A stretch of DNA of 64,000 bases from contig NIVC01000785.1 of assembly GCA_002269645.1 (NCBI GenBank), positions 62,001-126,000 of the forward strand, in the 5' to 3' direction. The position numbers and the translations under genes were made by a program. Shown in pieces: positions 546 to 62,097 of this stretch (positions within the stretch are counted from its first letter, which is position 1; every line of letters begins with the position of its first letter). Source of the DNA: Macrostomum lignano. Its lineage: Eukaryota. The notes below the pieces were generated by a model. The model ran no database searches, had not been told where the DNA came from, and worked only from the letters and a program-made list of their open reading frames with translations.

Positions 546-2198
546 GTCCCCATTAGCGTCAGGCTGCAGCATCGCCAGCCGCAGGCGCAGCTCGGCCACC
601 TCAGACCGCAGGCCGTCTACCAGACCCGGACTCGAGCCGCACGCCTCGCAGACGTCACCACAAACCTTGGCGGCGTCAACATTCTTCTTATTCTCATCAG
701 CCGCCGCCTCATCGAGCAGCTGGCGTCGCAGGCGCAGCAACAGCAGCCTGACTCCGGCCACCTCCTGGCAGAGCTCGCGAACGTCCGGCAGCGTAAGCGG
801 CGACGTCGCCACCGGATCCGCCGTTGCCATGGCGACGTGGGAAGGAGATGTCGAAGCGGAGTGCCGTCGGAGCTCCCAGAGACGCGGAGGCGGCGGCGGC
901 GGCTCCTCATCATCGTTGCTGTCGATTTGACTGGGGAGTAAAATGGGAAGAATGGAGAGGGGATTTTACTGAGCTGAAAAGAAACATGACGGATAAATGA
1001 TAAATACTGAGAGCTGACAATGCCCCTAACACTATACATTTAACCGTAGTGACGACAATTAGTAATGACGCAATGGGATGAGTGCCAGAATAATATTAAT
1101 GGATGGGAAAATGGGAGATGGGGATGGGGAAATGGAATGTGGGGATGGGGAAATGGGAGATGGGGATGGGGAAATAGAATATGGAGATGGGGAAATGGGA
1201 TATGGGGATGGGGAAATGGAATGTGGAGATGGGAAAATGGGAGATGGGGATGGGGAAATTGAATGTGGGGATGGGGAAATGGGAGATGGGGATGGGGAAA
1301 TGGGAGATGGGGATGGGGAAATGGAAGATGGGGATGGGGAAATGGAAGATGGGGATGGGAAAATGGGAGATGGGGATGGGAAAATGGGAGATGGGGATGT
1401 GGAAATTGAATATAGGAATGGAAATTGAATACAGGGATGGGAAAATGGGAGATAGGGATGGGGAAATTGAATATAGGGATGGGGAAATTGAATATAGGGA
1501 TGGGGAAATGGAAGATAGGGATGGGGAAATTGAATATAGGGATGGGGAAATGGAAGATGGGGATGGGGAATGAGAGATGGGGATGGGGAAATTGAATGTG
1601 GGGATGGGAAAATGGGAGATAAGGATGGGGAAATGGGAGATACGAATGGGAAAATGGAAAATGAGGATGGAAAAACAAAAAACGGAGATGAGAAAATAAA
1701 AGATAGGATGAAGAAACAGAAGAAAAAGATGTTTGGAAGACAAGCATGTAAAACATCTCTAAGAAATATACTACCACAGTCAGAGTGAAAGGCATGCACT
1801 GAGCATGCTGGATACTGGTGCGGAGTTTTACATCAGTTTGTGCAAGTGTCTTCTAATAAGAATTCAAAAAAACAAATATTATTGCATGTGCAGATTGAAA
1901 AGATAGCAAAAAACGAAGATAAACAGCCAGTCCCTGTGTTTTAGGCAAGTGACAACATGCCAAATAGCAATAATTTGTTACCTGAATTACTTTTAATGAA
2001 TGTTCCATCTGCGACAGACCCTGTTGTTAAATAATTAATCAAAATACTTAAAATATTATAATAACTTCATCCAGAACTATTTGTTCAATGGATCAGTGAA
2101 CTCGGTAATTTTCTGACAGTTGGAATATTGACACAGACAGATAAACACACCATCGCACACACACAAACAGACAGACAGACAGACAGCCAGCCAGACAC

Positions 2199-2233
<35 letters not shown>

Positions 2234-2294
2234 CACAGACAGTCAGGCAGACAGGCAGACAGACAGACAGACAGACAGACAGCCAGCCAGACAC

Positions 2295-2337
<43 letters not shown>

Positions 2338-2362
2338 CACAGACAGTCAGGCAGACACACAC

Positions 2363-2409
<47 letters not shown>

Positions 2410-2410
2410 C

Positions 2411-2449
<39 letters not shown>

Positions 2450-2478
2450 CACAGACAGACAGTCAGGCAGACACACAC

Positions 2479-2525
<47 letters not shown>

Positions 2526-2554
2526 CACAGACAGACAGTCAGGCAGACACACAC

Positions 2555-2593
<39 letters not shown>

Positions 2594-2622
2594 CACAGAC
2601 AGACAGTCAGGCAGACACACAC

Positions 2623-2669
<47 letters not shown>

Positions 2670-2698
2670 CACAGACAGACAGTCAGGCAGACACACAC

Positions 2699-2737
<39 letters not shown>

Positions 2738-2766
2738 CACAGACAGACAGTCAGGCAGACACACAC

Positions 2767-2825
<59 letters not shown>

Positions 2826-2854
2826 CACAGACAGACAGTCAGGCAGACACACAC

Positions 2855-2893
<39 letters not shown>

Positions 2894-3058
2894 CACAGAC
2901 AGACAGTCAGGCAGACACACACACAGACAGACAGACAGACAGACAGACACACAGACAGACAGACAGACAGACACACACACACACAGACAGACACACAGAC
3001 AGTCAGGCAGACAGGCAGACAGACAGACAGACAGACAGACAGACAGCCAGCCAGACAC

Positions 3059-3093
<35 letters not shown>

Positions 3094-3118
3094 CACAGAC
3101 AGTCAGGCAGACACACAC

Positions 3119-3185
<67 letters not shown>

Positions 3186-6100: not shown

Positions 6101-8138
6101 TCCGAGAGCCTCTCGTTACACATCCAGATGTTCTGCCTTGATGCTGGACTAGCTCACTTTCTAGGAATCTGTTCTGATTGCATTCTAACAAACTGAAGCA
6201 TTTTCGGCACTAAACTTTCTCGGCGGCTCTGAGAGCCAGAGCCTCAAACAGACAGAGAAATCTGTTCGAGTTGTGTCTGTAGGTTTGGTGGACCACCTTC
6301 TGAGAGCCAAAGCCTCAAACAGACTGAGAGAGCTGATTCAGTTGTGTCTGTAGGTTATGTGGACCAGCTTCTCTACAGCAATTGAGTTGCAGGCCTTGCA
6401 GCTAGCTACTTTGAGATCATCAAACGAAACTCACTTTTCTGGACTCGGTGTCGACGGATCTGCGAGCAGACTGATGATTTTCACCAGGCGATGCGGCTTC
6501 TTCGATTTCGCAGTGGCTTTTTGCGACGGTGTTTTTTTAGTTTTTATCTTAGGCTTGGCGTCCTTTTTTGCGGGTCATCATATCTTGGTTGTAGATTACA
6601 GTTTTTGGCACAATAAATTTATATATGTATGAAACTTGGAGTAAGGATTAACATTAGACCTATTAAGTATAAAAAAACCGTTCTAATCTATACAATTGCA
6701 ATCCTTTAGAGTTGTTTAGTATGGATTATAAGTACTTTCTTTTAAACTGTCTGTGTCTGGTCTCACTACGCCATGGTTTACGTGGACCACCCGCTTAGAC
6801 ATTATATATCCCTCTCTCCACTGTCTTACCTTCAGAACGCTTGCGGGTTTCCTATTGGCTGCGGTCGGTCCCATTGTTGGGGTGGATCTATCCTCCTAAG
6901 TGTTAACCAGCCAATTATAGAAAGGGAGGTCTGTCTGTCTGTCTGTTCCAACCCTATAATCCTGCACATGTGTTTACGTGGACCAAACAGACAGTGAGTG
7001 TTAGGCTGACTGTTAATGCGTTCTTAGTTTTACTGGGACCGCAATCAAGTCGACCTTTTGCTAGAGAGTCAGAGACCCGATCGCTAGCTAAAAGGCCCTT
7101 CTTAATTGCGTCCTCTTGATCAAATCTTTTGCATGTACATGTATGAATTGTCCTTTTCAATTAGGTAAATTGCATCTTCAACTTTGCACTTGAAAGGCTG
7201 CAGCTTAGGATCTTCTTCTTCCAACATTGGAGGAGGATAGAACAGGATATCCCATAGTGTTTAGTATAGAATTGGCAAGCACTTAATTCATGAAGTTGCT
7301 ATTTTCTTCTTGTGTAATGGTAGAACCTCAGAAATTCGCATTTACACAGTGTGGCTATCAAGGACCACTGGGAGTTCTTGAGAAGTCATTGAAGAATACT
7401 ATTTAGGATTCACTTAAATATCTTTCTTGTCTCGGAGTCTTTATCGTTTGATCTGGTTAGCGAATTGGATTTCTTTACGTTGGTGTCTTACTCTGTGAGT
7501 CTGTGCTCAGAGTACGATACCGGAATTGCTGGAACTGAGCTAATTAAATGGAGTTTAAAGTTTACTGTATCAAATTCATTTCGCATACGAGGTTTCAGAA
7601 TTTTTAATTAACCTGCGTACCTACTTGAATGTCAAAGAACTGAACGCATATTGTTTTAAAGCCAGTAGCGGTCATAATATGATGCCAACATACCCCTTTG
7701 TTCGTAAGGTAATGATCTGTAAAAAATTCAGTTTTGCATTGAATCTATGCTTAATAACTGCTATACACAAACAGACACAAACAGACACAAACAGACGATT
7801 TTCGAAAAATTTTCTAAAATTTTTCGGTTTACGTGGACCAGACTCGCTCGGTTTAGGTAGACCAGGCTGGAGGTCCAGCTAAACTGAAATGCAAATAACT
7901 TTGGAAAAAACCATGCTAGACATCCCAAAATTGCTTAAGCCTTTCTTGACCCGCCTGACATTAATGTGAGATCCTCATCAACGTCTTAACCCCACCAGAG
8001 ACAAAATTATTTGGTGGTCCACCTAAGTGGTCTACCTACACCGGGTGGTCCAGCTAACGAGGCTACTGAACTTCCAAAAAGTCCACGTAAACACACAGAC
8101 AGTAGAACACACAGACAGACAGTCAGGCAGACACACAC

Positions 8139-8181
<43 letters not shown>

Positions 8182-8210
8182 CACAGACAGACAGTCAGGC
8201 AGACACACAC

Positions 8211-8257
<47 letters not shown>

Positions 8258-8286
8258 CACAGACAGACAGTCAGGCAGACACACAC

Positions 8287-8325
<39 letters not shown>

Positions 8326-8354
8326 CACAGACAGACAGTCAGGCAGACACACAC

Positions 8355-8393
<39 letters not shown>

Positions 8394-8422
8394 CACAGAC
8401 AGACAGTCAGGCAGACACACAC

Positions 8423-8469
<47 letters not shown>

Positions 8470-8498
8470 CACAGACAGACAGTCAGGCAGACACACAC

Positions 8499-8537
<39 letters not shown>

Positions 8538-8566
8538 CACAGACAGACAGTCAGGCAGACACACAC

Positions 8567-8625
<59 letters not shown>

Positions 8626-8654
8626 CACAGACAGACAGTCAGGCAGACACACAC

Positions 8655-8693
<39 letters not shown>

Positions 8694-11600
8694 CACAGAC
8701 AGACAGTCAGGCAGACACACACACAGACAGACAGACAGACAGACAGACACACAGACAGACAGACAGACAGACACACACACACACAGACAGACACACAGAC
8801 AGACAGACAGACACACAGACAGGCAGACAGAAATGCTCGACTTTCCAAACCTACATGTAGAAGTGCACTCGTATTCGACTACATATTTCAGTCCCTATAT
8901 TAATAATACGCATAAGCTACAATAGAAGCTTCAATAGCTAGACGAAGGTGAAGCTGATAAAAGACCAGAACGCAGTCACACAGAAACGCAGCTAGCCAGC
9001 CAGGAGCAACTGAAACAGAGCTAGTGATGAAACAGCAGTATGATTGATTGTTAATGGCACACTTTGGTAATGAAAAAAGAATTTTACAATATATTTTTAC
9101 ATGCAATCTACTATTCGCCTGAGCTCTGTTCAAATACAAATTGCAACCATTTTGGAGAAAATATAGGAAGAATCCATCGCACAATAACTGTGCGAGTTGT
9201 AGGGGTTGTAGCCTAAGTGGTTAGAGCGTTGGAATCACGACTTGAAGGTCGGTGGTTCGATTTCCAATCCCACTCGGAACAATTTGTGTCCTTGAGCAAG
9301 ACACTCGACTCTGCATTGCTTCAGTTCACCCAGCTGTAAAATGGGTGCCAGCATTAGCTGGAGTAATTGAGGATGTGTGTGGTGACCCCCCAGTCCTTGG
9401 ACTGAACAGCCGTACGCAGTCTCAGATGCGCCGCAGAATAGCTGGGGCTGAGCTGTCGGTTGCACATCTGGCCATTAGGGCACGTGTAATCAATTATTAT
9501 TAATCAGTATTATCGAACAAAAAAGTTAGTCCAAAATTGCAGAAATTGGGAAAATTTGAATGACCAAAATTCTATATAATTTTTGTATATTTGTGCCCTC
9601 AAATCCAGGTTTCTCGTCAGTCGTCCTAGACACTTTTGGATCTCAAAACTCAATTAGGATCTGATATAATGAAATAAAACGAGGCATCTGATAGGCCCAG
9701 GATAGCCTTGAAGCGATTCACTGAAGGCTTCAGTTAGAACAGGTGATTATCGTATTCAAAAGAAATAGGAACTGGAGGCATTGCAATCTTGAAGTTCAAT
9801 CCAAAATGAACGCACGTCTCAGTCCAGTATCGCCCCATTTTTGCACGTCTGTCATCTCAAAAGAGTCGGTTTTTTCTTTTTCTTTTTTTGAGACAGCTGC
9901 TCACACAGAACAGACAGTGCTAGGTACGTACTAGGTCGAATGCACTGTACCCCCGATGAAAACGTCTCGGTACAGTTCGTTAAAAAGTCGCAAGAGTCGG
10001 CCCCAGAGTTGATAGTCACTAGAGAGTTGTTTGTGACTTGACTCTAGCGATTCTAGTCACGGTAACTTTTTCTACGGGTACAATGCAAGATCGAAAATTG
10101 CTTCTGTGGTGCCTATGAAATAGTGTAGAAATAGGATAGAAAAAGCGTAATGTAAAAAATAAAATAAGCTTCATGTCGAAGTTAAGAGATTCATTTGGGA
10201 ATCCCTACGATGTCGAGGCTTGCAGGGAATCGCTATAATGCTGTAGTAGTGCTATAATGACTCTTAGAGAGAATTACTGAAATTTCAATGCTTCAGGGCT
10301 AGGGTTAGGGTTAGGGTTGGGGTTAGGGCTAGGGTTAAGCTAGGGTTAGGGTTAGAAGGTTGACAGATTTCAAGGCTTATGGGGGCATTGCTGAGATGTC
10401 AAGGGGGGAGTTGATATGCTAAGGCTTGTGGGGGGGGGGGAATTGCTGACATGTCAAGGCTTACAAGGGGTTGCTGAGGTATAATGCAAAGAGACGCTTA
10501 CATTTAGTTTATTAAAAAAACTTGTACTGCATTTTTTAGGCTCCCTAACGGGGGGCGCTGATTGCTAGTCCAAACCTAAAGCCGATACAATTTAGATAGG
10601 TGGTGCCGTAAACACGCATTTCTTTGACTGGGAAATCTCGGGATAACGTCTCGTTTTGACGAATCACATTTCTTGGTCTCGGCTGAAGTAGAAGGGCACC
10701 TACGTCTCACTGTTGAACTGGAGTTTCAGCATTGACGATTTCAACACGTACCATCGCTAATTTCTCATATCCCTTTTATTTTTCTCCTCAATATTAATAT
10801 TATTAGCAATAATTGATTACACCTGCCCCAATTGGGCCAGATGTGCAACCGACAGCTCAGCCGACGCTATTGCCAAGCGCATCTGAAGGCTGCGTACGGC
10901 TGTTCAGTCCAAGGACTGGGCGGGGGGGTCGCCACACAACCCTTAATTACCCCAGCTAATGCTGGCACCCATTTTACAGCTGGGTGAACTGAAGCAATGC
11001 AGAGTTAAGTGTCTTGCTCAAGGACACAAATTGTTCCGAGTGGGATTTGGAATCGAACCCCCGACTTTCAAGTCCAACCACTAGGCTACAACTCCTAGTG
11101 AGGGGGGGGGGGTTTATAGCCTAGTTGTAGCCTTGAGTCTCCTTTAAACTCAACTCATTAATTCTAAAACACGCTCACACTCACCTATCAAAAGTGACGG
11201 ACTCAAATAATTTAATAGATCCGTGATCATCGTAAGAAGAGGCGCCAATATCGCTGTAGGTGTGCTCAGCCGATGGCGCAACGGGCACCGAGTTATTGGC
11301 ACTGTTGTCATCGCCACAGTCCCCAGCTTGGAGAGCGTCCTCATCTGAGTTCAGATCGGCGACTCCGTTCTCGCTTAAAAATGTATCTAAATGAGGCACC
11401 TGGCTAAGCGCCCTGGCGTCAGAATTGGCAGCGGGCACACCTGCGGCGGCAGTCGGATCCGATGGAGCCTGGCCATCTTCGCCGCGATCGGAAGTGACAC
11501 TAAAAAAAGCGTTCAAAAATCAGATAAATCAGAGTAGGATGGCAGGCCGAAAAACTACCCCAGAGTCAGTGCAGGTAACACAGGTAAATAGGGAAGAAGG

Positions 11601-17100: not shown

Positions 17101-17289
17101 CCTGCAGGTGGAGCAAGGAGAAATCCATTACAGCATCACTCTAGCTCAGACTGTATGGGGTTATGATTCAAAGGGTTGGTTAAGTCCTTGCAGGTGGAGC
17201 AAGGAGAAATCAATTATGTATAACATCACTCTAGCTCAGATTTTATGGGGCTGTGATTCCTAGACCCTGCCTACTTAAGCTAGCAAACG

Positions 17290-17640
17290 CATTCAATGGA
17301 ACTGCCAAGAACTAAATGGCGAGCACTAGTATTTAATGGCTTGGGTGCAAACAAAGGCTGCGCCACCAGCAGTGTCAGCCAGCAGACAGTTGACATAACA
17401 TCAAGTTCGCGCTTGACCTTGCCAGTAGGGTGCCTACAGCGTGAGCAGCAGCATCTCCTGCACCAGCTGTGGGCAGTACAACTCGGTGCGGATGAGATAG
17501 CCTGCGAGCTGGAGTCGTCGACAGCGCAGTAGATCACTTGGATGTGGCAGGCCAACATGGCGATAGAGTGGATGCCAATTATAGCAACATAGTTGAAGTT
17601 GTAAGATGACGAAGTGTCCAGGAACCATTTTACCATTGCT
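17290..17640 (-). mobile_element. Degenerate 3' fragment of a non-LTR retrotransposon (LINE) ORF
   Basis: Minus strand reads LYRHVGLPHPSDLLRCRRLQLAGYLIRTELYCPQLVQEMLLLTL then stops. This resembles the post-RT C-terminus of RTE-type LINEs (RRLxLAGH motif; recalled similarity). A ~90-bp tandem duplication at 17045-17260 may be its 3' UTR. Confidence 0.5.
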
Positions 17641-18256
17641 ACATTCAAATCCAACAATATGTGCACTTATTTGGCAAAAAATCCATTGTTATGTGCACCT
17701 TGGTAAAAAAAATTTTGTTCTGCATAGCACATGTGATGTATATATAAAGTATACCTTGGTTGATATCTTCTAAAAGCTAGGGCCTAATATGCCTTCTAAG
17801 TTGTCCTAAGGGTTATTTTTGTCTTTTTAAAATATTAGGCCTAATAATAAATACTTTTTGAACTAATCTCTGTAGTCTACTATTATTATATACATGATGG
17901 GTCTTTTACAATGTAATACTTTAATTATATACTTTGAATATTATACATGTATTAGCCCCCCTATATATTAATAGCATATTATATAAAATTTATTGCATAT
18001 GTATTATTGGCCTAAGTGGTTTTGTAGGGCCTATCATAGTATTTTATTATAGGCCTACCTTATGATTATCTTCTATTAAATATTTCTTTTAGTCTAGGCA
18101 ATAGGCATTAATGAAATAAGATAGTCATGGTTTACACTTCAATTGATTTTGTCCTCTAAAGCAAGTTTTTAAATTCTTATTCTAGTTGTTCATACCCTTT
18201 TATATATATTTTGCCTTTAAGCTAATTTCTTAGATTCTAAATCTTAGGGGTCTTAT

Positions 18257-18288
18257 CAAGGACTTCTAGACTAGTCTAGAAGTCCTTG
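18257..18288. mobile_element. 32-bp perfect palindrome with 8-bp TSD: TIR-only hAT-like micro-element
   Basis: CAAGGACTTCTAGACT|AGTCTAGAAGTCCTTG, flanked by GGTCTTAT at 18249-18256 and 18289-18296. Confidence 0.7.
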
Positions 18289-18469
18289 GGTCTTATTTTA
18301 AATGGTTTATTCTCCTAATCTTTAGGATTTTTTCAATATTACTAAATTATTAAAGCCAAAATATTGCTTAATCCTTTTAATTTAGAAGTTTAAAAGAAGA
18401 GAATAAGTTATAAAAACAAGTTTAAATTCATTTTAGTTTTGTTGCTACTCACCCCTAGTTATAATAAAG

Positions 18470-18770
18470 TAAATTGCCTAAGAGCAATTCCCCATCAACA
18501 TTGGAGCCTAAGAGCAATACCCCATATATATATTGGAGCCTACAAGCAATTCCCCGTGGACATTGGAGACTAAGAGCAATTCCCCATGTATTGGAGCCTG
18601 CAAGTAATTCCCCATGGACATTGGAGCCTAAGAGCAATTCCTCATAAACATTGGAGCCCAAGAGCAATTCCCCATGAACATTGGAGCTTAAGAGCAATTC
18701 CCCATGAACATTGGAGCTTAAGAGCAATTCCCCATGGACATTGGAGCCCAAGAGCAATTCCCCATGAACC
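18470..18770. repeat. 30-bp minisatellite (AGAGCAATTCCCCATGAACATTGGAGCCTA)
   Basis: Period 30 (18661/18691); just upstream of eIF3c. Confidence 0.9.
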
Positions 18771-19092
18771 TTGGCGACTGATTGCTTCAGTAGTCAATTT
18801 GCAACTTCCTCTTGTTTTCCTCCCCCTTTTTCCATTGCTTCAACTGTTTTTTTCTATCTCCTATTTTCCCTTCCTGCTTCTCTCCTTGCTTTGCTCCTTC
18901 GTCATCATTTTTGCCTTTTCTCCTTTTGGAACAGGAATCAATTTTGGCCAGCGACCTCTTTTACTGGGGGGTCACATAGATCAGATAGATAATCCTAGAG
19001 GGTGAAACGCAAAAGCCTACATGAGATCACAGTATTTAGTTATTGCTGTATCTTTATGCAGCTGCAGGGCTCACTGATCTCTAAGCAAGACA

Positions 19093-29586
<10,494 letters not shown>

Positions 29587-31300: not shown

Positions 31301-33322
31301 TCAGAAAGGTCCTCCATAGTGCTCAAGGCAGTTGCCGCGATTCGAGCTCGGGACGTCTCCATCTTGACTTGACGGGCGATCGCAGCAGCGGAGAATCACA
31401 AGGCTGTCTCGGATTCGCTCTGCCGCGCAGATCAGGGCAGTCCGGTAGCGCCGGGTGGCGCAGGCGCAGACGGCGCTGTTCGCGGAGAAGTGCAGCAGGT
31501 AGACCGCTTGGGCGTACCGCCTGGCCAGCAGGGCGCGCAGCACCCAGCCCTGGCTGGCGTCGGCAGGCAGCAGGGCACTGAACAGCATGGCGGCACTGTT
31601 GGGCAGGTTGAGCAGCAGGTAGGCCAAGCAGACGCAGAGCAGCATCCGGGTGACCTGACGGCTCCGCCGCATTCGGTCGACAGCGGCTTCGTTGCAGTTG
31701 CAAACGTCTGCCCCGGCCAGAAGCTGGGGAGCCGAGCAGGAGCGCCTGCGGGTGCATCAAATTAATAAATTTACTTTACAGCTGAAGGCTGCGTATGTGG
31801 CTGTTCAGTCCAAGGACTGGGAGGGGTCGTCACACACAAACCTCAGTTACACCTGAGCAGACTCATTTTAGCGCCACAGGCACTCATTTTAGCGCCACAG
31901 GCACTCATTTTAGCGCCGCAGACAGGCACTCATTTTAGCGCCACAGGCACTCATTTTAGCGCCGCAGACAGGCACTCATTTTAGCGCCGCAGACAGGCAC
32001 TCATTTTAGCGCCACAGGCACTCATTTTAGCGCCGCAGACAGGCACTCATTTTAGCGCCGCAGACAGGCACTCATTTTAGCGCCGCAAGCAGGCACTCAT
32101 TTTAGCGCCGCAGGCAGGCACTTATTTTGGTGCCACAGGCGCTATATTTTGTCACCCTGAAGCAAAATTATTGATTTCCGAATGGGTCACAAGATGACGT
32201 GGGGTATCGGGGGGACAACAAAGCATTGCATGTCCCTCCATAGTTTTTACTGGGGACATGTCCGTCCTGTCCACCCCCGGTGGCGACGCCCCTGGTTGCC
32301 TGTTATTCTTAGTATATAATGGTTGCGTGTGCTGGCGCAACTTGTGGCAATATTTAGGCATGCTTTTTATCCCTAATCACACACTCATGTGACAGTCGAG
32401 GCATGGGAAGCTTAAGTCGAAAGACACATGCAAAGTCGTGAAAACATGTCAGTCACTGTGAGCCGGTTTTGCCGCAAAATGCGAAACGTCTTTAGCAGTA
32501 AATTACTCTGTCTCACGTTATACGGGCTTCGAAATGCAAACCAAGAAACATAGTGACGTTTTTTATATTATTTTGGTTCGCATGTTTCAGGGGATTTTGC
32601 TAACATTAGCATCACACCATGGGGCAACATCGGATTGTTGGCAGTTGGGCAAATTCTTAAATTTTTACTCACCGAGCCTCCGTGCTCTTGGCCAGCAGTC
32701 TCCGGTAGGCGCCTCGCACTCGGCAGCCGATGCAGCAGTTAAGCGCGCAGATCGCGAATCCCGGCACCAGCGCCGTGATGACGCAATCAAGCGTTGAAGC
32801 CGCCAATTCGAAGCCGTCCCGTCTGGCGCAGTGCATCTGCACCGTTGTTCCGTTGCCACCTGGCTCGGCGTGTCCCGGCAGCACGTAGACTGTGGTGAAG
32901 AGCACGTGAGAGTTGACTAGGCCGCAGGCGGCCGCGGCCGACCAGATGACGGCTGGCGAGCCGCCCAGACCGGGCCTGCCGAAGGTGAGCAGCGCTCTGT
33001 CCAGCGACACGCAGACCAGCAGCCAGGGGCTGAGTGTGCTCAGCGTGCCGAATACGAACTGGCTGGCAAAGCAGCCGAAGCCGCTGCGAATGTGCGCGTC
33101 TGTCAGTGCGAAGCAGGCGTAGCACAGCAGTAGCAGCAGGTCGGTGAGCGACAGGGCGCTCAGGTAGGCAGCCAAGTAGTGACGCCAGACTCTGCGCTGT
33201 GAGAAAGCCAGCAGGCTGAGTGTGTTGGCAGCGATGCCGCAGCACAGGATGGCGGGCTCAACCTTGGTGAGGATCTGCAGCATGGAAGCGTAGAGTGCCT
33301 CGGGATCTGTTGAGTTTGTCAT
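31301..33322 (-). CDS. Class A (rhodopsin-like) GPCR, probably a peptide-receptor-like orphan, 364 aa, 2 exons
   Basis: Exons 33322-32673 (CG|gtgagt) and 31745-31301 (ccgcag|), phase 2, 1095 nt. N-glycosylation site NST, TM1 GIAAN, TM2 LSLTD, TM3 SLDRA, TM5 PGFAICALN, TM6 YLLLNLP, TM7 HFSANSAV. Confidence 0.88.
31778..31855 (-). mobile_element. Fragment of the SINE family
   Basis: CTGAAGGCTGCGTA..GGCTGTTCAGTCCAAGGACTGGG matches 10885-10920. Confidence 0.7.
31857..32140 (-). repeat. Minisatellite (GGCACTCATTTTAGCGCCGCAGACA), reverse complement of the 30079-30897 family
   Basis: Reverse complement TGTCTGCGGCGCTAAAATGAGTGCC matches the downstream array unit. Confidence 0.9.
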
Positions 33323-34174
33323 GGCGGACAGGTTCCAGTCTAACAATGTTAGAAAACATGGGATCTGTAAGTTATTCTTCTTTGAATAGCATTATCCTCT
33401 TATTTGCATAAATTGAGAAGTGGTTTGTCATTGGCTGCATTCGAGGGAGGCTCTCATTGGTTCGCAGCATGCGGTCTGCTCGGATTGTACAAGAGGCGGC
33501 CTGGTTTAAGAGCGCGCAAGAGAAAAAAATATGAATATGATATGAATATGATAGGTCATTTAACTATCCTGTTCGTCTTTGAAGTTTCCATAGCTGTCAG
33601 TGTTCTGTCCGACGACATGTCTTAATAATTACAATTTTAAACAAAAAATGGTGATAAGAAACACGACTTTAAAAGCGCTAAAATTGATAGCGATAGATTG
33701 CTACTAAAATTCGAAGGGCCTGCTCTCGAAGTTTTCGATTGAACACTCGTGTCCCCATGAGAATGTTGAATGTGCATGTTTTTATTGCTTTTCCTCAAAA
33801 TTGTCCCCTCTCATTCGATTTGTTTGATAGTTGGTCAAGTTGCGTCTTCGGTTGATCAAGACCGAGAGCTTGTCAAGAAGGATGTTCATTTACGTGTAAC
33901 TAATAATAACGTTGTACTCGCGGGTTGCGATCTCGTCTAGCCCAGTCGTTTTTTTTCCCGGGTAGCGGGTTCGGTGCGGGACTGCCCCGGTGCGCGGCGG
34001 AGGGATAGACAGAGGCCGGATGACGTGGCCACTTTGAGGGGAAGAAGGAGAGATGCGACTCGGGAGCGCACAGACACTCTTCGGTCGCGGAGGACTCGGG
34101 GGACGGCCGCGGTCAGCGGAGCGGATAGCCACTCGGAGCCGGCCCGGGAGTCACCGAGGTGAATAAGGAAGCAA

Positions 34175-38034: not shown

Positions 38035-38300
38035 CTTAATTACACCTGCCTTAATGGACAGATAGGCAGCCGACAGCTCAGCCGCAGCTATTGCGCGGCG
38101 AATCTGAAGGCTGCGTACGGCTGTTCAATTCAAGGACTGGGGGGTCGCCACACACCCTCAATTACCCCAACTAATGCTGGCACCCATTTTACAGCTGGGT
38201 GAACTGAAGCAATGTAGAGTTAAGTGTCTTGCTCAAGGAGAATCGAACCCCCGACTTTTAAGTAGTGAGTCCGACGCTCTAGCCACAAGACTAGAACCCC
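38035..38300 (-). mobile_element. tRNA-derived SINE, same family, with internal deletion after the B box
   Basis: Reverse complement GGGGTTCTAGTCTTGTGGCTAGAGCG...GGTTCGATTC-TCCTTGAGCAAGACACTTAACTC... Confidence 0.85.
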
Positions 38301-38820: not shown

Positions 38821-41800
38821 ATGGAGGCCAATTTGCTTGGCAACGTCACCTTCGCTGGCTCCGCTAGCGCTGGGGTGTACATGGTGGCGAGGTCGCTCAC
38901 CATTCCGACTGCAGCTGCCGGTCTTCTGCTTAGCTGCCTCAGCCTGGTCGCGCAAGTCCGAAAGCACCGCGGCTACCCGAAGGCCTCCGACATGGGTCTC
39001 GTCCTGTTGCAGCTGGCGCAGGTGCACTGCTGTCTGGCTGTCGGCTTCTACGTCTCAGTAGACTTGGCGACTCACCAACCGGGCCAGAGTCGCGTGACCA
39101 GCTTGATGGGCAGCACCTTGCATGCTGTGAGCCTGAGAAAGTTTCTCAAAGTTTTAGCTTTGACTTACCTTACCTTTCACCTGCGCTTTAGCATCTTACC
39201 CAGCTGCGCTCAGGAAACTCCAACTGCGTCTCTGTAAATGGACGCTGCGATAAAAGCATCCGGTTAGCAAGCATCCGGTTAGCAAACATCCGGTTAGCAA
39301 ACATCCGGTTAGCAAACATCCGGTTAGCAAACATCCGGTTAGCAAGCATCCGGTTAGCAAACATCCGGTTAGCAAACATCCAGTTAGTAAACATCCGGTT
39401 GGCAAGCATCCGGTTAGCAAACATCCGGATAGCAAGCATCCGGTTAGCAAGCATCCGGTTAGCAAGCATCCGGTTAGCAAACATTCGGATAGCAAGCATC
39501 CGGTTAGCAAGCATCCGGTTAGCAAGAATCCGGTTAGCAAGCATCCGGTTAGCAAACATCCGGATAGCAAGCATCCGGTTAGCAAGCATCCGGTTAGCAA
39601 GCATCCGGTTAGCAAACATTCGGATAGCAAGCATCCGGTTAGCAAGCATCCGGTTAGCAAGCATCCGGTTAGCAAGCATCCGGTTAGCAAGCATCCGGTT
39701 AGCAAGCATCCGGTTAGCAAGCATCCGGTTAGCAAGCATCCGGTTAGCAAGCATCCGGTTAGCAAGCATCCGGTTAGCAAGCATCCGGTTATCAAAAATC
39801 TGGCAGTCGCATGTAGCTGAGCAGGGAAGATTAAGCGGCTTACTGCAGTTGGGACTTAGCACCGACAGCAGCAGGTTAGGTAATAAAATCGCATCGGGCG
39901 TAGGCTCTAAAAGATTTTTTCAATTACTTTTCTGATAAGGGTGAAAACGATTGGCGAGGCCTGCTATTTTTCGACGACGCGATGGCGATAAATCGTTGTT
40001 GAAGCGAGAAGAGAAACAAGAAATGAGTCAACAACGCTGAAGCGAAATTGCTTTCAGAGAATATGGCCTGGGAGGTATTTTTAGTTGCAGCCATCTCACT
40101 CTGGGGGTGGCCCGCATCCCCTGTCCGAGGACGCCTGGGCGCTAAGACATTCGTTATGGGGGCTCAGGGCATAACCAGCATTTTTCATCGGCCATCCAGC
40201 CCTTTGACGGACAGGGGCCTCATGAGGGAATGAGGGACCATCATTGCATTTCAACAGGGTGCGAGTTCAATTGATTGAGCAAATGGCTCTATAATCTGTA
40301 GGTATCACCATCATTTACAAACTGAATTTGTCATGACATAATCCAATACGAGCGTACGACGTACATCCGTAGGTAGCCTACTGCTGGTTCTTGGTCAGCC
40401 TGACAGTGAAGAACCTGTTGACAGCGTACATCGGCATGCTCTGCTGCAAGGCAATCGCCAAGCCGCTGGAGTTCCGCAGCTGGCTGACGCGCCGCATCCA
40501 GCTGTGCAGTTTCGCCGTACTACTGCTGGCCACTGTAGCCATCGTGCTTGGCGTCTTCGCCGTGTGGCGTCTGGCGACCGGCGGCAGCGAGAAAGTGCTG
40601 AAGACTGGTGCTGCCGCTGACTAGGGTGGCTCAGACTTACCTGTCTGTGACAATAATTATTCTGATTGCAGGCAAAACCTCCGACAACCAACCTGAAGCA
40701 GCCACTGCCGTCCCAACTGGAACTGCCAATGAGAGCTCCTTTGAAGCCTCTGCTGCTGCTGCGTCCTCGGCTGCCACTGCCGCTGCTTCTGTTGCAGCTA
40801 TTGCCGCAGCGATTCCGAGACAACTCATAGAAACTCATTCCACGGTTGGTGCGGCCGTTGCCGCTGCTGTTGCCGCAAGTGAAAACGCCACTAGCGCAGT
40901 TTCTGAGGCAGTAATTGCAGCCGCGTCTGCAGCTTCGGCGGCCTCTTCAGCTATTGAAATAGAACTAGAAGAAGGAGACGATTTGGCTCCTGTCAAGGAC
41001 GCTGCAGAAGCTGCGGAAGCTGCCACTGAGCGAGTAGCAGCCGCAGCTTCAATCACCAGGGAACGCACAGAAACGGTCACTAGCATCCTGTCTAGAGCGG
41101 ATGCAAACGCCGCCAGCAGAGTCACAGTAATAGCTGAACAGGCCGCGGCTGCCGCTGCTGATTTGTCAACGGCCGCTGCAGAGTCGGCCGCCGCTGCCGT
41201 TGCTGCTGCAGAACCGAGTGTCATCAAAGTCTGCGAAGGCGATACCATGGACTTTAGGGTGTTCACTGCCGTTAGAGTCGCCGAGGCAAATGCTGAAGCG
41301 GCCAGAGCAGCCGCGGCGACCGCTTCTGCCGCCACCTTTGCCGCTGCTGCGATCGCCAACGCAGCCAAAGCTGTGGCCGATGCGTTGGCGATCGCTAAAG
41401 CCACCAACTCCGGCGCAGTGAACTCTGCCGCTGCCGCAGCCGCCGGAGCTACGGCTGCATTAGCCGCAGTCAATCTCAACATTGCAGGCTCAGCCGCTGC
41501 AACTGCGGCATCCGCTTACGCTGCCAACGCTAAAGCAGCTGCCGCGTACGCAAAGTCGCGAAACCTGCTCAACGCCAGAGTCATCTTGCTTTCGCTGGCC
41601 GCTTGCCTCGCGGTGTTCGACTTGCCGGGAGCCGTCCTGGTGATTCTTGGACAGTTCCACTCGTTCCCGGACTGGTTGGTGCCAATCGACGACCTGCTCG
41701 TGAGCGTCCCGACTGTGGCTCGTTTCGTCATTTTCTACGCATTCAGCGCCAGCTTTCGCGTCCAGATGCGCCGCCTGCTGTGGCGACAGGCTCCGCTACA

Positions 41801-41879
41801 ACGCGGCGGTTCCGGCAGCGACGCGGAGCAGCAGATGCTGCCGCTGGTGACCACTCGCTATGGCAGGTCTGCCCGTTAA
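38821..41879 (+). CDS. Divergent GPCR-like membrane protein with a ~300-aa Ala-rich insert, ~582 aa, 3 exons
   Basis: Exons 38821-39126 (GCT|gtgagc), 40373-40607 (ccgtag| ... G|gtgctg), 40672-41879 (ttgcag|); phases 0/1 match, 1749 nt. Four N-terminal TM segments including [12 protein letters not shown] (like DRYxAIxxPL), C-terminal FDLP (TM6-like) and [12 protein letters not shown] (TM7/helix 8-like). Confidence 0.72.
39255..39795. repeat. 15-bp minisatellite (GCATCCGGTTAGCAA), intron 1 of the GPCR-like gene
   Basis: Period 15 (39661/39676). Confidence 0.95.
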
Positions 41880-48299: not shown

Positions 48300-50582
48300 A
48301 CTCATTAACTGAATTATAAACTCATGAACTCACTCATAAACTAATGAACTCACTCATAAACTCATGAACTCACTCATAAACTAATGAACTCACTCATAAA
48401 CTCATGAACTCACTCATAAACTAATGAACTCAATCATAAACTAATGAACTCACTCATAAACTAATGAACTCACTCATAAACTAATAAACTCACTCATAAA
48501 CTAATGAACTCACTCATAAACTAATGAACTCACTCATAAACTAATGAACTCAATCATAAACTAATGAACTCACTCATAAACTAATGAACTCACTCATAAA
48601 CTAATAAACTCACTCATAAACTAATGAACTCACTTTTAAAAATAATGAACTCACTCATAAACTAATTAACTCACTCATAAACTAATGAACTCACTCAAAC
48701 TCATGAACTCACTCATAAACTCATGAACTCACTCATAAACTAATGAACTCAATCATAAACTAATGAACTCAATCATAAATTAATGAACTCACTCATAAAC
48801 TCACTCCTAAACTAATGAACCCACTCATAAACTAATGAACTCACTCATAAACTAATGAACTCACTCATAAACTAATGAACTCACTCATAAACTAATGAAC
48901 TCACTCATAAACTAATGAACTCACTCAGAAACTAATGAACTCACTCATAAACTAATGAACTCACTCATAAACTCATGAACTCACCCATAAACTAATGAAC
49001 TCACTCATAAACTCATGAACTCACTCATAAACTAATGAACTCACTCATAAACTCACTCCTAAACTAATGAACTCAATCATAAACTAATGAACTCACTCAT
49101 AAACTAATGAACTCACTCATAAACTAATGAACTCACTCATAAACTAATGAACTCACTCATAAACTAATGAACTCACTCATAAACTAATGAACTCACTCAT
49201 AAACTAATGAACTCACTCATAAACTAATGAACTCACTCATAAACTAATGAACTCACTCATAAACTAATGAACTCACTCATAAACTAATGAACTCACTCAT
49301 AAACTAATTAACTCACTCATAAACTCATGAACTCACTCAAACTCATGAACTCACTCATAAACTCATGAACTCACTCATAAACTAATGAACTCAATCATAA
49401 ACTAATGAACTCAATCATAAATTAATGAACTCACTCATAAACTCACTCCTAAACTAATGAACTCACTCATAAACTAATGAACTCACTCATAAACTAATGA
49501 ACTCACTCATAAACTAATGAACTCACTCATAAACTAATGAACTCACTCATAAACTAATGAACTCACTCATAAACTCACTCCTAAACTAATGAACTCACTC
49601 ATAAACTAATGAACTCACTCATAAACTAATGAACTCACTCCTAAACTAATGAACTCACTCATAAACTAATGAACTCACTCATAAACTAATGAACTCACTC
49701 AGAAACTAATGAACTCACTCATAAACTAATGAACTCACTCATAAACTCATGAACTCACCCATAAACTAATGAACTCACTCATAAACTCATGAACTCACTC
49801 ATAAACTAATGAACTCACTCATAAACTCACTCCTAAACTAATGAACTCAATCATAAACTAATGAACTCACTCATAAACTAATGAACTCACTCATAAACTC
49901 ACTCCTAAACTAATGAACTCACTCATAAATTAATGAACTCACTCCTAAACTAATGAACTCACTCATAAACTATTGAACTCACTCATAAACTAATGAACTC
50001 ACTCATAAACTAATGAACTCACTCATAAACTAATGAACTCACTCATAAACTAATGAACTCACTCATAAACTAATGAACTCACTCCTAAACTAATGAACTC
50101 ACTCATTAACTATTGAACTCACTCATAAACTAATGAACTCACTCATAAACTAATGAACTCACTCATAAACTCATGAACTCACTCCTAAACTAATGAACTC
50201 ACTCATAAACTAATGAACTCACTCATAAACTAATGAACTCACTCATAAACTAATGAACTCACTCATAAACTAATGAACTCACTCATAAACTAGTGAACTC
50301 ACTCATAAACTAATGAACTCACTCATAAACTCATGAACTCACTCATAATCTCATGAACTCACTCATAAACTCATGAACTCACTCATAAACTCATGAACTC
50401 ACTCATAAACTCATGAAGTCACTCATAAACTAATGAACTCAATCATAAACTAATGAACTCAATCATAAACTAATGAACTCACTCATAAACTAATGAACTC
50501 ACTCATAAACTAATGAACTCAATCATAAACTAATGAACTCAATCATAAACTCATGAACTCAATCATAAACTCATGCACTCAT
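48300..50582. repeat. 20-bp minisatellite (ACTCACTCATAAACTAATGA), ~2.3 kb, intergenic
   Basis: Period 20 (49081/49101). Confidence 0.97.
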
Positions 50583-51248: not shown

Positions 51249-56836
<5,588 letters not shown>

Positions 56837-57766: not shown

Positions 57767-58655
<889 letters not shown>

Positions 58656-59884
58656 TGTCCATTAATCCCAGGACAACCTCCCCGTCCAATTTTTGTGAGG
58701 ACTTTGACCCCCCTCCCTGCTACTCAGTTTCCAAGAACCGCTGGATCACCAATGCATAGCCTATTATTAGTGACTGTCGTTATTCATGACCGCTTATCTA
58801 TCGAACGAAGTTTCATTTTGCGCCTTCGATGTACTGGGCAAACTTTTAATTCTAAGAAAAGTTTTTCTTGCTTCACAATTTTTTGGCTTTTAGTTTTCTA
58901 CCATTGTTTCTGTTCAGCCTAGAACTTCGATTTCTTTACCTACTAATATCAAAGAGAAAAATCAACACAAATTGTTTTTCACTTTCTCCAGATGTGTGTA
59001 CCAACGTACGTTACTCATTAGGAGATATCATGTGTCGGCTCTATAGTGTTTTGCCTATTCAAAAGATATATTTTAGAATATTTATATTTATCTAGCACTG
59101 AGCAAGCGAGTTATCGTGACTCTCCAGCCCTTCGAGACGAGCAGAAGACATTTTAGACAGAAGAATTGCAGCCAAAAAATGCTCCTTGTCAGCTCATGAA
59201 GCTCAATTTCAATGTCAAAAAGACGAGAAGATTCAGAGATGAGGCGGGGTTTATCCGCTAGAGCGACCCCTGGCAGACCAAAATTTGGGTCACGCAAGAG
59301 ACGACAGACCGCAAAGCAGTGGCTGAAGGGCGCGCCTCTCAGAGGTCACGTGACCTAGGCTGCTCTGTTGCTACCAGCTGCTCGGTAAAGTGATTTACGA
59401 AAATAATTATCCTTTTTTAACGCTCAATATTTTCTAATTTTGTCTTCTTTTACTTTTCTTGTAAAAGTTCTCTTCTCTTTAATTCAGATGAAGTTATAGT
59501 CTGCAAGCTGCTCAGAAATAAATGATATTCCTATTCTTTTGTAATTGGTTGAAACAGTGCTGAAAATTTTTTTGATTATCTTTGACTAATTGACACGCAA
59601 AGCTAATCCCTTTTGGCTAAATCACCATGGCACTTGCAGTCTCTTCGCTCAACATTTCTGCTAATTATGAAGTCGCCGCACTCGCGCACACAGTGAGGCT
59701 TGCATGAATTTTGAGCAGTGCTCCTGAAATATTCATTGGCCGCGCACAATGACTGAGCTCACTTCCCACTGTACTTGTATCGTAATAGTTAGACAGCTTC
59801 ATTAATCATTAGATAGCGAGAATAGACTATTGTGAGATAAATTGGAGATTAGCTATTCCGAAAGGAAGCGAGGATGAGAGGGGA

Positions 59885-60779: not shown

Positions 60780-62097
60780 CGCTATCCCAGAAGTAAGTTT
60801 CGCTATTGTATAAAATCTATTAATAGCATCTTGGACAGGAGACACTATAGCCATTTACTAATCTATAGTAGTCTATGGTAAAGAAGAATGACAAGTTTCA
60901 GAGTGCTGTCATGCTCACAAGCTGCAGAGCATCACTTAAATCAAATAGACTTTTGCAAAGATGGCCGTTCGGAACATCATCAAGTTTGGAGTTTTGGCTG
61001 GAAAATCGGCAACTGCAATTCATGAAGAGCTTGGAGACGTTTGAGAGAGGAAGCTCCATCAATTCAGACAGTGCGCAATTGGGTTCGTGAGGTCCAGGGA
61101 GGGAGGCTATGCATGGAAGATAAAGAGCGCTCCGGAAGGCCGAGAACAGCAACAACCGACTCAAATGCCGAGCGTGTGAAGGATGCCGTGACAGAGGACA
61201 GCAGGCTCACTTGCGCTGAGCTCGAGGAACTTCTAGACATCCCCCACAGCACGGTGCATCGCATTCTAACTGAGAACTTGGGCATGCAGAAGATCTTCGC
61301 CAAATGGGTGCCCCACCTGCTGACAGAAGAGCAGATGGAGGAGCGGGTGAGGCTGTCCAGAGAGCACCTTCGTCGATTTCATCGAGAAGGCAACGACTTC
61401 CTCAGCAGGATTGTGACAGGAGATGAGACTTGGGTCTACGAATGGGATCCTGAGCTGAAGCGCCAGTCAGCACAGTGGCTTCCAAGGGGATCAGCAAGCC
61501 CGGAGAAGGTGCAGCGCAAGCAGAGTTCAATGAAGGTGATGCACATCATCTTCTTCGACGTCCATGGCATTCTGGTGGACTGGCCTGTGCCAGTCGGTAC
61601 CAAGGTGAACGCCGAATATTACAAATGGATTCTGCAGGAGAAACTGCGACCGGCGATCAGAAAGAAGCGACCTGGCTTGCTGGAGAGAGGCGTCATCTTT
61701 CATCACGACAATGCGCCTGTGCACCGCGCCAGAAGAGTGGAAGAGCTCCTGGAGTCCTGGGACTGGGAAGTTCTGCCTCAGCCGCGCTATTCGCCTGACT
61801 TGGCTCCGGCGGACTTCTACATTTTCCCAAGGATGAAGGAGAGTCTTCGTGGTCAACTTTGCGCCTCGGTGGAACAGATTAATAACAGTGCTTCATCAGC
61901 TCTCCGGCATCTGGCCATCGGCGGTTGCAGCCCTGCCTTTGAGGCGTGGGTGCGCCGCTGGCAGAAGTGCGTTGACCTCGGCGGCAAATTTGTAGAGTAA
62001 CTATGAGTTCATTTTGCAGTTGCAAAGTTTTGTTGATTGCTGGGTCACTAGTTTGTCTTTTAAAGCATAGCGAAACTTACTTTTGGGATAGCCCTCG
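60780..62097 (+). mobile_element. Full-length mariner (DD34D) DNA transposon
   Basis: TA at 60778-79 and 62098-99. Right TIR 62067-62097 (reverse complement CGAGGGCTATCCCAAAAGTAAGTTTCGCTAT); left TIR C----GCTATCCCAGAAGTAAGTTTCGCTAT lacks 4 nt and has 1 mismatch. Confidence 0.95.
60961..62000 (+). pseudogene. Mariner transposase, ~346 aa if one 1-nt deletion at ~61040 is repaired
   Basis: MAVRNIIKF...ELGDV from 60961 hits TGA at 61042; the reading continues in the -1 frame as LREEAPS. Motifs WVPHLL, GDETW, HHDNAP, YSPDLAPADF; 34 residues between the 2nd and 3rd Asp. Confidence 0.9.

Follow-up and report, generated by a model that had tools for sequence, protein, structure and literature searches.

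We analysed a 64,000-nucleotide window of the flatworm Macrostomum lignano (contig NIVC01000785.1 of assembly GCA_002269645.1, positions 62,001 to 126,000), which contains at 38821-41879 on the + strand a gene resembling G-protein-coupled receptor (GPCR) genes. Comparison with its relatives indicates that this locus very probably belongs to a small and rapidly evolving family of rhodopsin-like (class A) orphan receptors with seven transmembrane helices (7TM; TM1 to TM7), found so far only in Macrostomum flatworms, and that its third intracellular loop (ICL3) is expanded to ~293 residues, 42% of them alanine. In the same explanation, which we hold to be highly likely as a whole, the gene would have two exons, exon 1 encoding TM1-TM2 and exon 2 running from TM3 through the stop codon, TM5 included. 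The first-pass annotation of this DNA had proposed a spliced 582-residue protein in which an alanine-rich insert of ~300 residues replaced the region from the second extracellular loop (ECL2) through TM5 to ICL3, leaving no conventional TM5. Judged against the related sequences, this TM5-less protein is most simply a gene-model artefact.

Gene layout and the fifth transmembrane helix

The window gene was compared with P0001 (BOX15_Mlig022205g2, 640 residues), which lies on M. lignano contig NIVC01001249 of the same assembly in a tandem array of three family genes, and with P0004 (BOX15_Mlig003474g1), P0005 (BOX15_Mlig024169g1) and P0006 (UniProt A0A1I8JM50). The P0001 model belongs to an M. 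lignano annotation built from a genome-guided transcriptome (PMC5730564). It contains one intron only, and a single open reading frame (ORF) of 1572 nucleotides extends from TM3 to the stop, including a loop of 306 residues with 44% Ala; in the M. lignano relatives generally, TM3 to the C-terminus is one unbroken exon. The features of the window gene are as follows, a slash marking splice sites.

38821-39126, + strand: exon 1 (102 codons), encoding the N-terminus, TM1, ICL1, TM2 and ECL1, with donor GCT/GTGAGC; aligns with P0001 residues 5-116 and with exon 1 of the paralogues on contig NIVC01001249
39127-40372, + strand: intron 1 (1246 nucleotides), with a GTGAG donor and a TAG/G acceptor; the homologous intron of P0001 has 697 nucleotides
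40373-40604, + strand: first part of exon 2, in frame +2, encoding TM3, ICL2, TM4 and the start of ECL2; 74-77% identical in DNA and 58% in protein to the M. lignano paralogues
40603-40607, + strand: frame break, with 2 nucleotides fewer than in all three M. lignano paralogues (window CTGAAGA--CTGGTG); the DNA alignment sets the gap between 40604 and 40605
40608-40673, + strand: TM5 coding segment in frame +3, placed by tblastn, by protein and DNA alignment and by profile alignment to the M4 muscarinic receptor
40674-41552, + strand: alanine-rich expanded ICL3 (293 codons, 42% Ala) sharing the frame of TM5 and TM6, recognised by composition, codon use and a position matching the paralogue loops
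41553-41879, + strand: TM6 (FDLPG), ECL3 (DWLVP), TM7 (RFVIFYAF), helix 8 (SASFR) and C-terminal tail, with the stop codon at 41877-41879, from profile alignment to the TRH, M4 and GRP receptors

The position of intron 1 is identical in four genes, namely the window gene and the three genes on contig NIVC01001249. The intron itself carries in the window a 15-nucleotide tandem array at 39254-39795 (AAGCATCCGGTTAGC, 36 copies, 93% matches).

The three segments joined in the first-pass annotation (38821-39126, 40373-40607 and 40672-41879) do give the open 582-residue product that it claimed. Nevertheless, the 64 nucleotides at 40608-40671 that it took as an intron encode a conserved hydrophobic segment in frame +3. 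When P0001 is searched against the window with tblastn, the match in frame +2 stops at 40600 (GGSEKVL), and a match in frame +3 begins at 40608, aligned to MLPLTRTTQTYLPVPLIVLIS. The nucleotide alignment of the window with three M. lignano paralogues is colinear all the way from TM3 to TM5, interrupted only by the 2-nucleotide gap, and the homology to paralogue exons continues across the supposed intron. The segment is almost invariant among the M. lignano relatives, LPLTR, QTYL, V, I and L being identical in the four-sequence family alignment. When the family profile is aligned with the M4 muscarinic receptor (E=0.005), the family motif tYLPV falls on FYLPV of M4, that is, on P5.50 in TM5. 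Read onward in frame +2, exon 2 meets a TAG at 40622-40624. We conclude that the TM5-less architecture probably arose because an open frame was forced across the 2-nucleotide break, with TM5 encoded in the spliced-out 64 nucleotides. As far as comparative sequence can tell, a normal TM5 exon is used, homologous in DNA and protein to that of the relatives, and the replacement of ECL2-TM5-ICL3 by the insert does not hold.

The frame break has about an even chance of marking a recent pseudogene. The window copy has lost R3.50 and P5.50, both retained in relatives, and a pseudogene is known in the family. On the other side, the gene is fully open over 1.8 kb but for this one break, so that the pseudogene, if it is one, must be young. 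The known case is the third gene of the array on contig NIVC01001249 (paralogue C, 17135-18977), whose donor GT is changed to AT and whose conserved YCW codon is changed from TGG to TGA; P0005, near-identical to it, is nonetheless annotated on another contig.

Clearly less probable, but a serious candidate, is an assembly, polishing or haplotype error as the source of the 2-nucleotide deficit, in which case the real gene would be an intact two-exon 7TM receptor of ~604 residues with an alanine-rich ICL3 like that of P0001. Difficulty and redundancy have been reported for M. lignano assemblies (PMC5730564). Repeats are extremely abundant in the window, with 47 strong rows in Tandem Repeats Finder (TRF), the break is the single disruption of the coding sequence, and the intact homologue P0001 shows that the architecture is viable. 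However, the gap (GAAGA/CTGG, slash at the gap) is outside a homopolymer, whereas long-read indel errors concentrate in homopolymers, and both the two lost residues and the documented family pseudogene speak for a genuine lesion. Programmed ribosomal frameshifting at the break was dropped as an explanation: the relatives are simply in frame, and no slippery motif was noticed, with no search aimed at one. An exact look-up of the 423-residue ORF in public assemblies, for transcript or read contigs, returned no record.

Receptor class and relatives

An exhaustive phmmer scan of 1.84 billion representative proteins recovered six true relatives, all from M. lignano (matches listed as P0001-P0007), and no schistosome or planarian protein at E<=0.001. 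The seventh match, a mycobacterial alanine-rich protein, was rejected as a false positive. Over the TM core, the window protein is 46-48% identical to P0001 and the paralogues, and it shares with P0001, P0004, P0005 and P0006 the intron position, the TM5 motif LPLTR..QTYL and the TM6-helix 8 motifs (ELPG, DWxVP and F..F.AFSANFR). The window copy differs from them by the frame break and by the loss of R3.50 and P5.50.

Several observations point to a class A receptor, in agreement with the GPCR-like character that the first-pass annotation had noticed. Three of the relatives carry the UniProt label G_PROTEIN_RECEP_F1_2, which is the PROSITE class A profile. In the PDB, nearly every match of the family profile is a class A receptor, aligned in the correct register; the profile aligns best with M4, from TM3 to helix 8. 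The TRH receptor matches from TM6 to helix 8 (E=0.012), and the cholecystokinin receptors from TM1 to TM4. Once TM5 is restored, which needs the 2-nucleotide correction, seven hydrophobic helices occur in canonical order and can be aligned to TM1-TM7 of solved receptors.

The Pfam family 7TM_GPCR_Srw (PF10324) comprises nematode serpentine receptors related to peptide receptors. This model matches two relatives (E=9e-5 and 2.5e-4, P0004 scoring 22.4 bits against a gathering cut-off of 22.2), the region from TM6 through TM7 to helix 8 aligning with the C-terminal 80 model positions; in the window this region is 41553-41879. The match is partial and marginal, and gives no evidence of orthology with nematode Srw genes. 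The similarity to 7TM_GPCR_Srw for which the first-pass annotation had suggested a hidden Markov model search is thus found in two relatives but not in the window protein.

The class A motifs survive as remnants. At R3.50 the window has CCK, where the relatives have FRC or FRF and so keep the Arg but lose the acidic residue. At P5.50 it has YLSV, with Pro replaced by Ser, as opposed to YLPV in the relatives. In TM6, P6.50 is kept and the W6.48 position is occupied by Asp or Glu (FDLPG, FELPG), so that there is no CWxP. In TM7, RFVIF in the window and SFFVF or HFAIF in the relatives stand in place of NPxxY, and the F-R of helix 8 is retained.

Some results weigh against a class A assignment. 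In the Pfam search no GPCR model matched the window protein, either as the 582-residue product or as its three parts, and of the classical motifs DRY, CWxP and NPxxY only degenerate forms are present. AlphaFold2 reached a mean pLDDT (predicted local distance difference test) of 45.8 for the frame-corrected full-length protein with a 3-sequence alignment, and of 39.9 with the insert removed and 5 sequences; this low confidence is explained by the existence of only 3-5 homologues. A Foldseek search of the full-length model against the PDB returned generic helical bundles only, none at E<=0.001. Given such models, the 7TM fold is supported by sequence only, and we call the gene GPCR-like on evidence that is consistent but weak.

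The alanine-rich third intracellular loop

The stretch singled out in the first-pass annotation, 40672-41560, encodes 296 residues, 122 of which are Ala (41%, compared with ~13% in the rest of the protein), a composition far from chance and in line with the original count. It lies between the TM4-like and TM6-like segments, as had been described, and is the sole alanine-rich open stretch in the 64-kb window. Also as described, it is not a nucleotide tandem repeat and its Ala codons are varied (GCC 42, GCT 38, GCA 26, GCG 16): TRF reports just three tiny arrays inside it (scores 31-40), and what look like direct repeats in it are merely matches with GCN periodicity, at <=75% identity and at distances divisible by 3. 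The antisense strand at 40835-41482 (- strand) is likewise open for 215 codons and alanine-rich, a by-product of the GCN periodicity that gives no evidence of a gene.

On sequence comparison, the stretch is an expanded low-complexity ICL3 and not a captured domain. The insert matches no Pfam family and no PDB sequence; the 11-residue Thr periodicity of type I antifreeze-like proteins gave no signal in it, and heptad or hendecad periodicity no robust one. A narrow peak at 3.67 residues lacks significance when the whole spectrum is considered (p=0.25-0.98), and P0001 does not reproduce it. In addition, the inserts of the window gene and of P0001 are no more alike than shuffled sequences (z=0.7). 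The captured coiled-coil or antifreeze-like module put forward in the first-pass annotation is not supported by these results, nor is its other proposal, a poly-Ala membrane-spanning surrogate for TM5, the insert lying between TM5 and TM6. The loop is probably helical, since AlphaFold2 predicts long helices over it (pLDDT 50-77) within the poor overall model.

Paralogues both with and without the insert, the search for which had been suggested, occur in M. lignano. In the two paralogues flanking P0001 on contig NIVC01001249, the same TM5 and TM6 are joined by ~20-25 residues, a loop length counted in three members of the family; P0004 has an Asn/Ser-rich ICL3 of ~50 residues, and P0006 another aberrant one. 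P0001 and the window gene have loops of about equal length at the same site (306 residues with 44% Ala and 293 residues with 42% Ala, respectively), with no shared sequence beyond composition. In the TM core, the window protein is 48% identical to P0001, which is 54% identical to paralogue A; the window gene would therefore be roughly an outgroup to P0001 plus the short-loop paralogues and not clearly the orthologue of P0001. Synonymous sites are saturated at the ~75% DNA identity between window and paralogues. For the two long loops, common descent with fast turnover and independent expansion are both possible.

ICL3 is the loop of the GPCR fold that best tolerates changes in length. The short loops of the paralogues hold an alanine-rich seed, VAASVAPAAAARR, and a seed of this kind may have been the starting point; slippage or unequal exchange of GCN-rich coding DNA would have lengthened the loop, with later divergence through point mutation. 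In an intact receptor the alanine-rich loop would be cytoplasmic and beside the G-protein site, where its most plausible role would be that of a bulky gate or spacer, such as has been described for other long ICL3s.

The codon positions speak for translation of the expanded loop: in the window loop 61% of first positions are G and 58% of second positions are C, with a mixed third position, and both long inserts show ~60% G and C at positions 1 and 2, respectively. Since G and C are kept there while position 3 is mixed, the pattern fits translation under compositional selection and not a decaying non-coding microsatellite. Two points count on the other side, namely that GCN periodicity by itself holds the frame open, so that a long ORF is weak evidence for selection, and that any function of the loop is argued from analogy alone. 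We also considered that the loop could be a selected functional module. Two or more divergent members would then have kept it for its composition and length, perhaps following separate expansions at one site, and it might serve as a rigid helical spacer, gate or scaffold at the G-protein face of a flatworm-specific orphan receptor. We consider the module unlikely, and still less likely a variant with expression of the window copy as a six-TM product of splicing.

Splicing could also remove the loop. If all or most of the alanine-rich stretch were untranslated, the mature receptor would have a short ICL3 like that of the paralogues. The older M. lignano predictions P0002 and P0003 do skip parts of the homologous insert, in-phase GCAG acceptors are numerous, and the GCN periodicity keeps the frame open even when selection is absent. 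Nevertheless, P0002 and P0003 delete TM segments or fuse neighbouring genes and are unreliable, whereas the transcriptome-based NCBI model P0001 reads through the insert. There is no GTRAG-type donor after TM5, both long inserts hold the TM5/TM6 frame over ~300 codons, and the bias at codon positions 1 and 2 with a randomised position 3 recurs in two independent genes. All of this makes an untranslated loop quite improbable, and an expanded ICL3 remains our preferred reading.

The supposed 64-nucleotide intron at 40608-40671 fares no better. It would yield a six-TM, TM5-less protein with the alanine-rich domain right after TM4, and in its favour the GT at 40608, created by an ATG to GTG change particular to the window copy, brings the frame back exactly when paired with an acceptor that looks good (TTATTCTGATTGCAG/GC); the quality of this acceptor (TTCTGATTGCAG/G) is a point against our own model. 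However, a frame open as far as the same stop is obtained with 152 GT..AG pairs, the pair chosen in the first-pass annotation being one among them. The donor CTG/GTGCTG at 40608 is weak, lacking the +4A and +5G of GTRAG, which is present in four of the four clearly read donors checked in the window (three in the gene for eIF3c, eukaryotic translation initiation factor 3 subunit C, and that of intron 1 of the receptor gene) and also in two intact M. lignano family genes. Genuine introns examined in the window and on contig NIVC01001249 measure 0.6-6 kb, the supposed intron has its homologue in exonic TM5 sequence and continues to encode this helix in frame +3, and deletion of TM5 would invert or strand TM6-TM7. 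The second same-phase acceptor that had been pointed out, ATTGCAG/GC at 41481-41489, exists and is in phase, but the acceptor at 41487 is merely one of 48 in-phase AG acceptors usable with the donor at 40608, which are this many because GCAG is common in Ala-coding DNA. The junction from 40607 to 40672 is thus without support, and it is very unlikely that these 64 nucleotides are a genuine intron. A six-TM decoy receptor, which had also been suggested, would need this weak cryptic donor to bypass the 2-nucleotide break, and nothing supports it.

Comparison with known receptors and genomic surroundings

Long insertions exactly between TM5 and TM6 also occur in the class A GPCRs with a long ICL3, such as the muscarinic M1-M5 and alpha2-adrenergic receptors, so that a long ICL3 is a known feature and one that receptor function tolerates. 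The usual long ICL3s are rich in Ser, Thr and charged residues and disordered, whereas the loops described here contain 42-44% Ala and are predicted to be helical. They are also longer, at ~293-306 residues, than any human class A ICL3; these loops cover 10 to 240 residues and serve as gates for autoregulation (Sadler et al. 2023, PMC10033409). Aminergic ligand-binding motifs were not identified in the window gene and its family, which also lack DRY and NPxxY.

A further point of comparison is PROF1 (platyhelminth rhodopsin-like orphan family 1), since both families consist of rhodopsin-like orphan receptors that are restricted to a flatworm lineage and retain only remnants of the class A motifs. 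PROF1 genes are described as intronless, with pseudogene-like fragments reported, and their motif remnants are [LI][AST]..[DEHN] in TM2, D[RK][CM] or DR[LV] in TM3, [FYV]...[SAT].P in TM6 and [NSD][FG]..[YF] in TM7 (PMC3261222). Compared by these published patterns only, the Macrostomum family fits in TM2 (LAQVH, LAHVN, LAFTN), and in TM7 the paralogues fit (SFFVF) but the window gene does not strictly (RFVIF). TM3 fails, having no Asp (FRC, FRF, CCK), and TM6 has Asp or Glu at a variable position. One conserved intron lies here between TM2/ECL1 and TM3, in contrast to the intronless PROF1. Because the genes have this intron and no homologue outside Macrostomum was detected, membership in PROF1 is not established.

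The rest of the window contains several other recognisable genes. An eIF3c gene occupies 19093-24305 (+ strand), with exons at ~19093-19605, 21078-21227, 21891-22130 and 23823-24305 and with PF05470 in all matches; its introns of 0.6-1.7 kb are filled with tandem arrays, and its three clearly read donors are G/GTRAG. A second class A GPCR-like ORF of 225 residues, unrelated to the receptor gene, is found at 32669-33346 (- strand), ~5.5 kb upstream of it and on the opposite strand. This ORF covers TM1-TM5 with DRA at the end of TM3, and matches Pfam 7tm_1 with E=4e-6 and 26.9 bits, under the cut-off owing to its incompleteness. At 61041-62000 (+ strand) there is a mariner/Tc1-type transposase ORF of 319 residues that looks intact, with the Pfam domains Transposase_1, HTH_32 and DDE_3.

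About one third of the window is tandem repeat, for example at 2159-3185, 8091-8831, 28499-29519, 48316-50581, 54710-55117 and 57767-58656. The arrays include (ACAG)n twice, (TATC)n, a 20-mer in 116 copies, a perfect (AGT)136 and (TC)447, and they account for many long spurious ORFs in several frames. A dispersed repeat of ~200 bp is present at 9217-9434, 10880-11073 and 38094-38286 of the window, the last copy just upstream of the receptor gene, and at 10553-10770 of contig NIVC01001249, in the P0001 intron (79-88% identity). In the comparison of the window with an M. lignano contig, shared repeats of ~200 bp reach 86-88% identity. Simple and tandem repeats are reported to make up 15% of the M. 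lignano genome (PMC5730564).

Overall, the locus appears as a class A-type orphan receptor with an unusually long alanine-rich ICL3, a finding of modest interest. Its main value is corrective, in that an apparently TM5-less GPCR dissolves once relatives are compared, and it illustrates that an exotic architecture can be invented when a small indel is bridged by a forced open frame. It also exemplifies low-complexity expansion within coding sequence, in a genome where simple repeats abound. For the Macrostomum-restricted orphan family itself, in which ICL3 ranges from ~20 to ~300 residues among close paralogues, these genes may form a natural series for the way in which the length and composition of ICL3 tune coupling.

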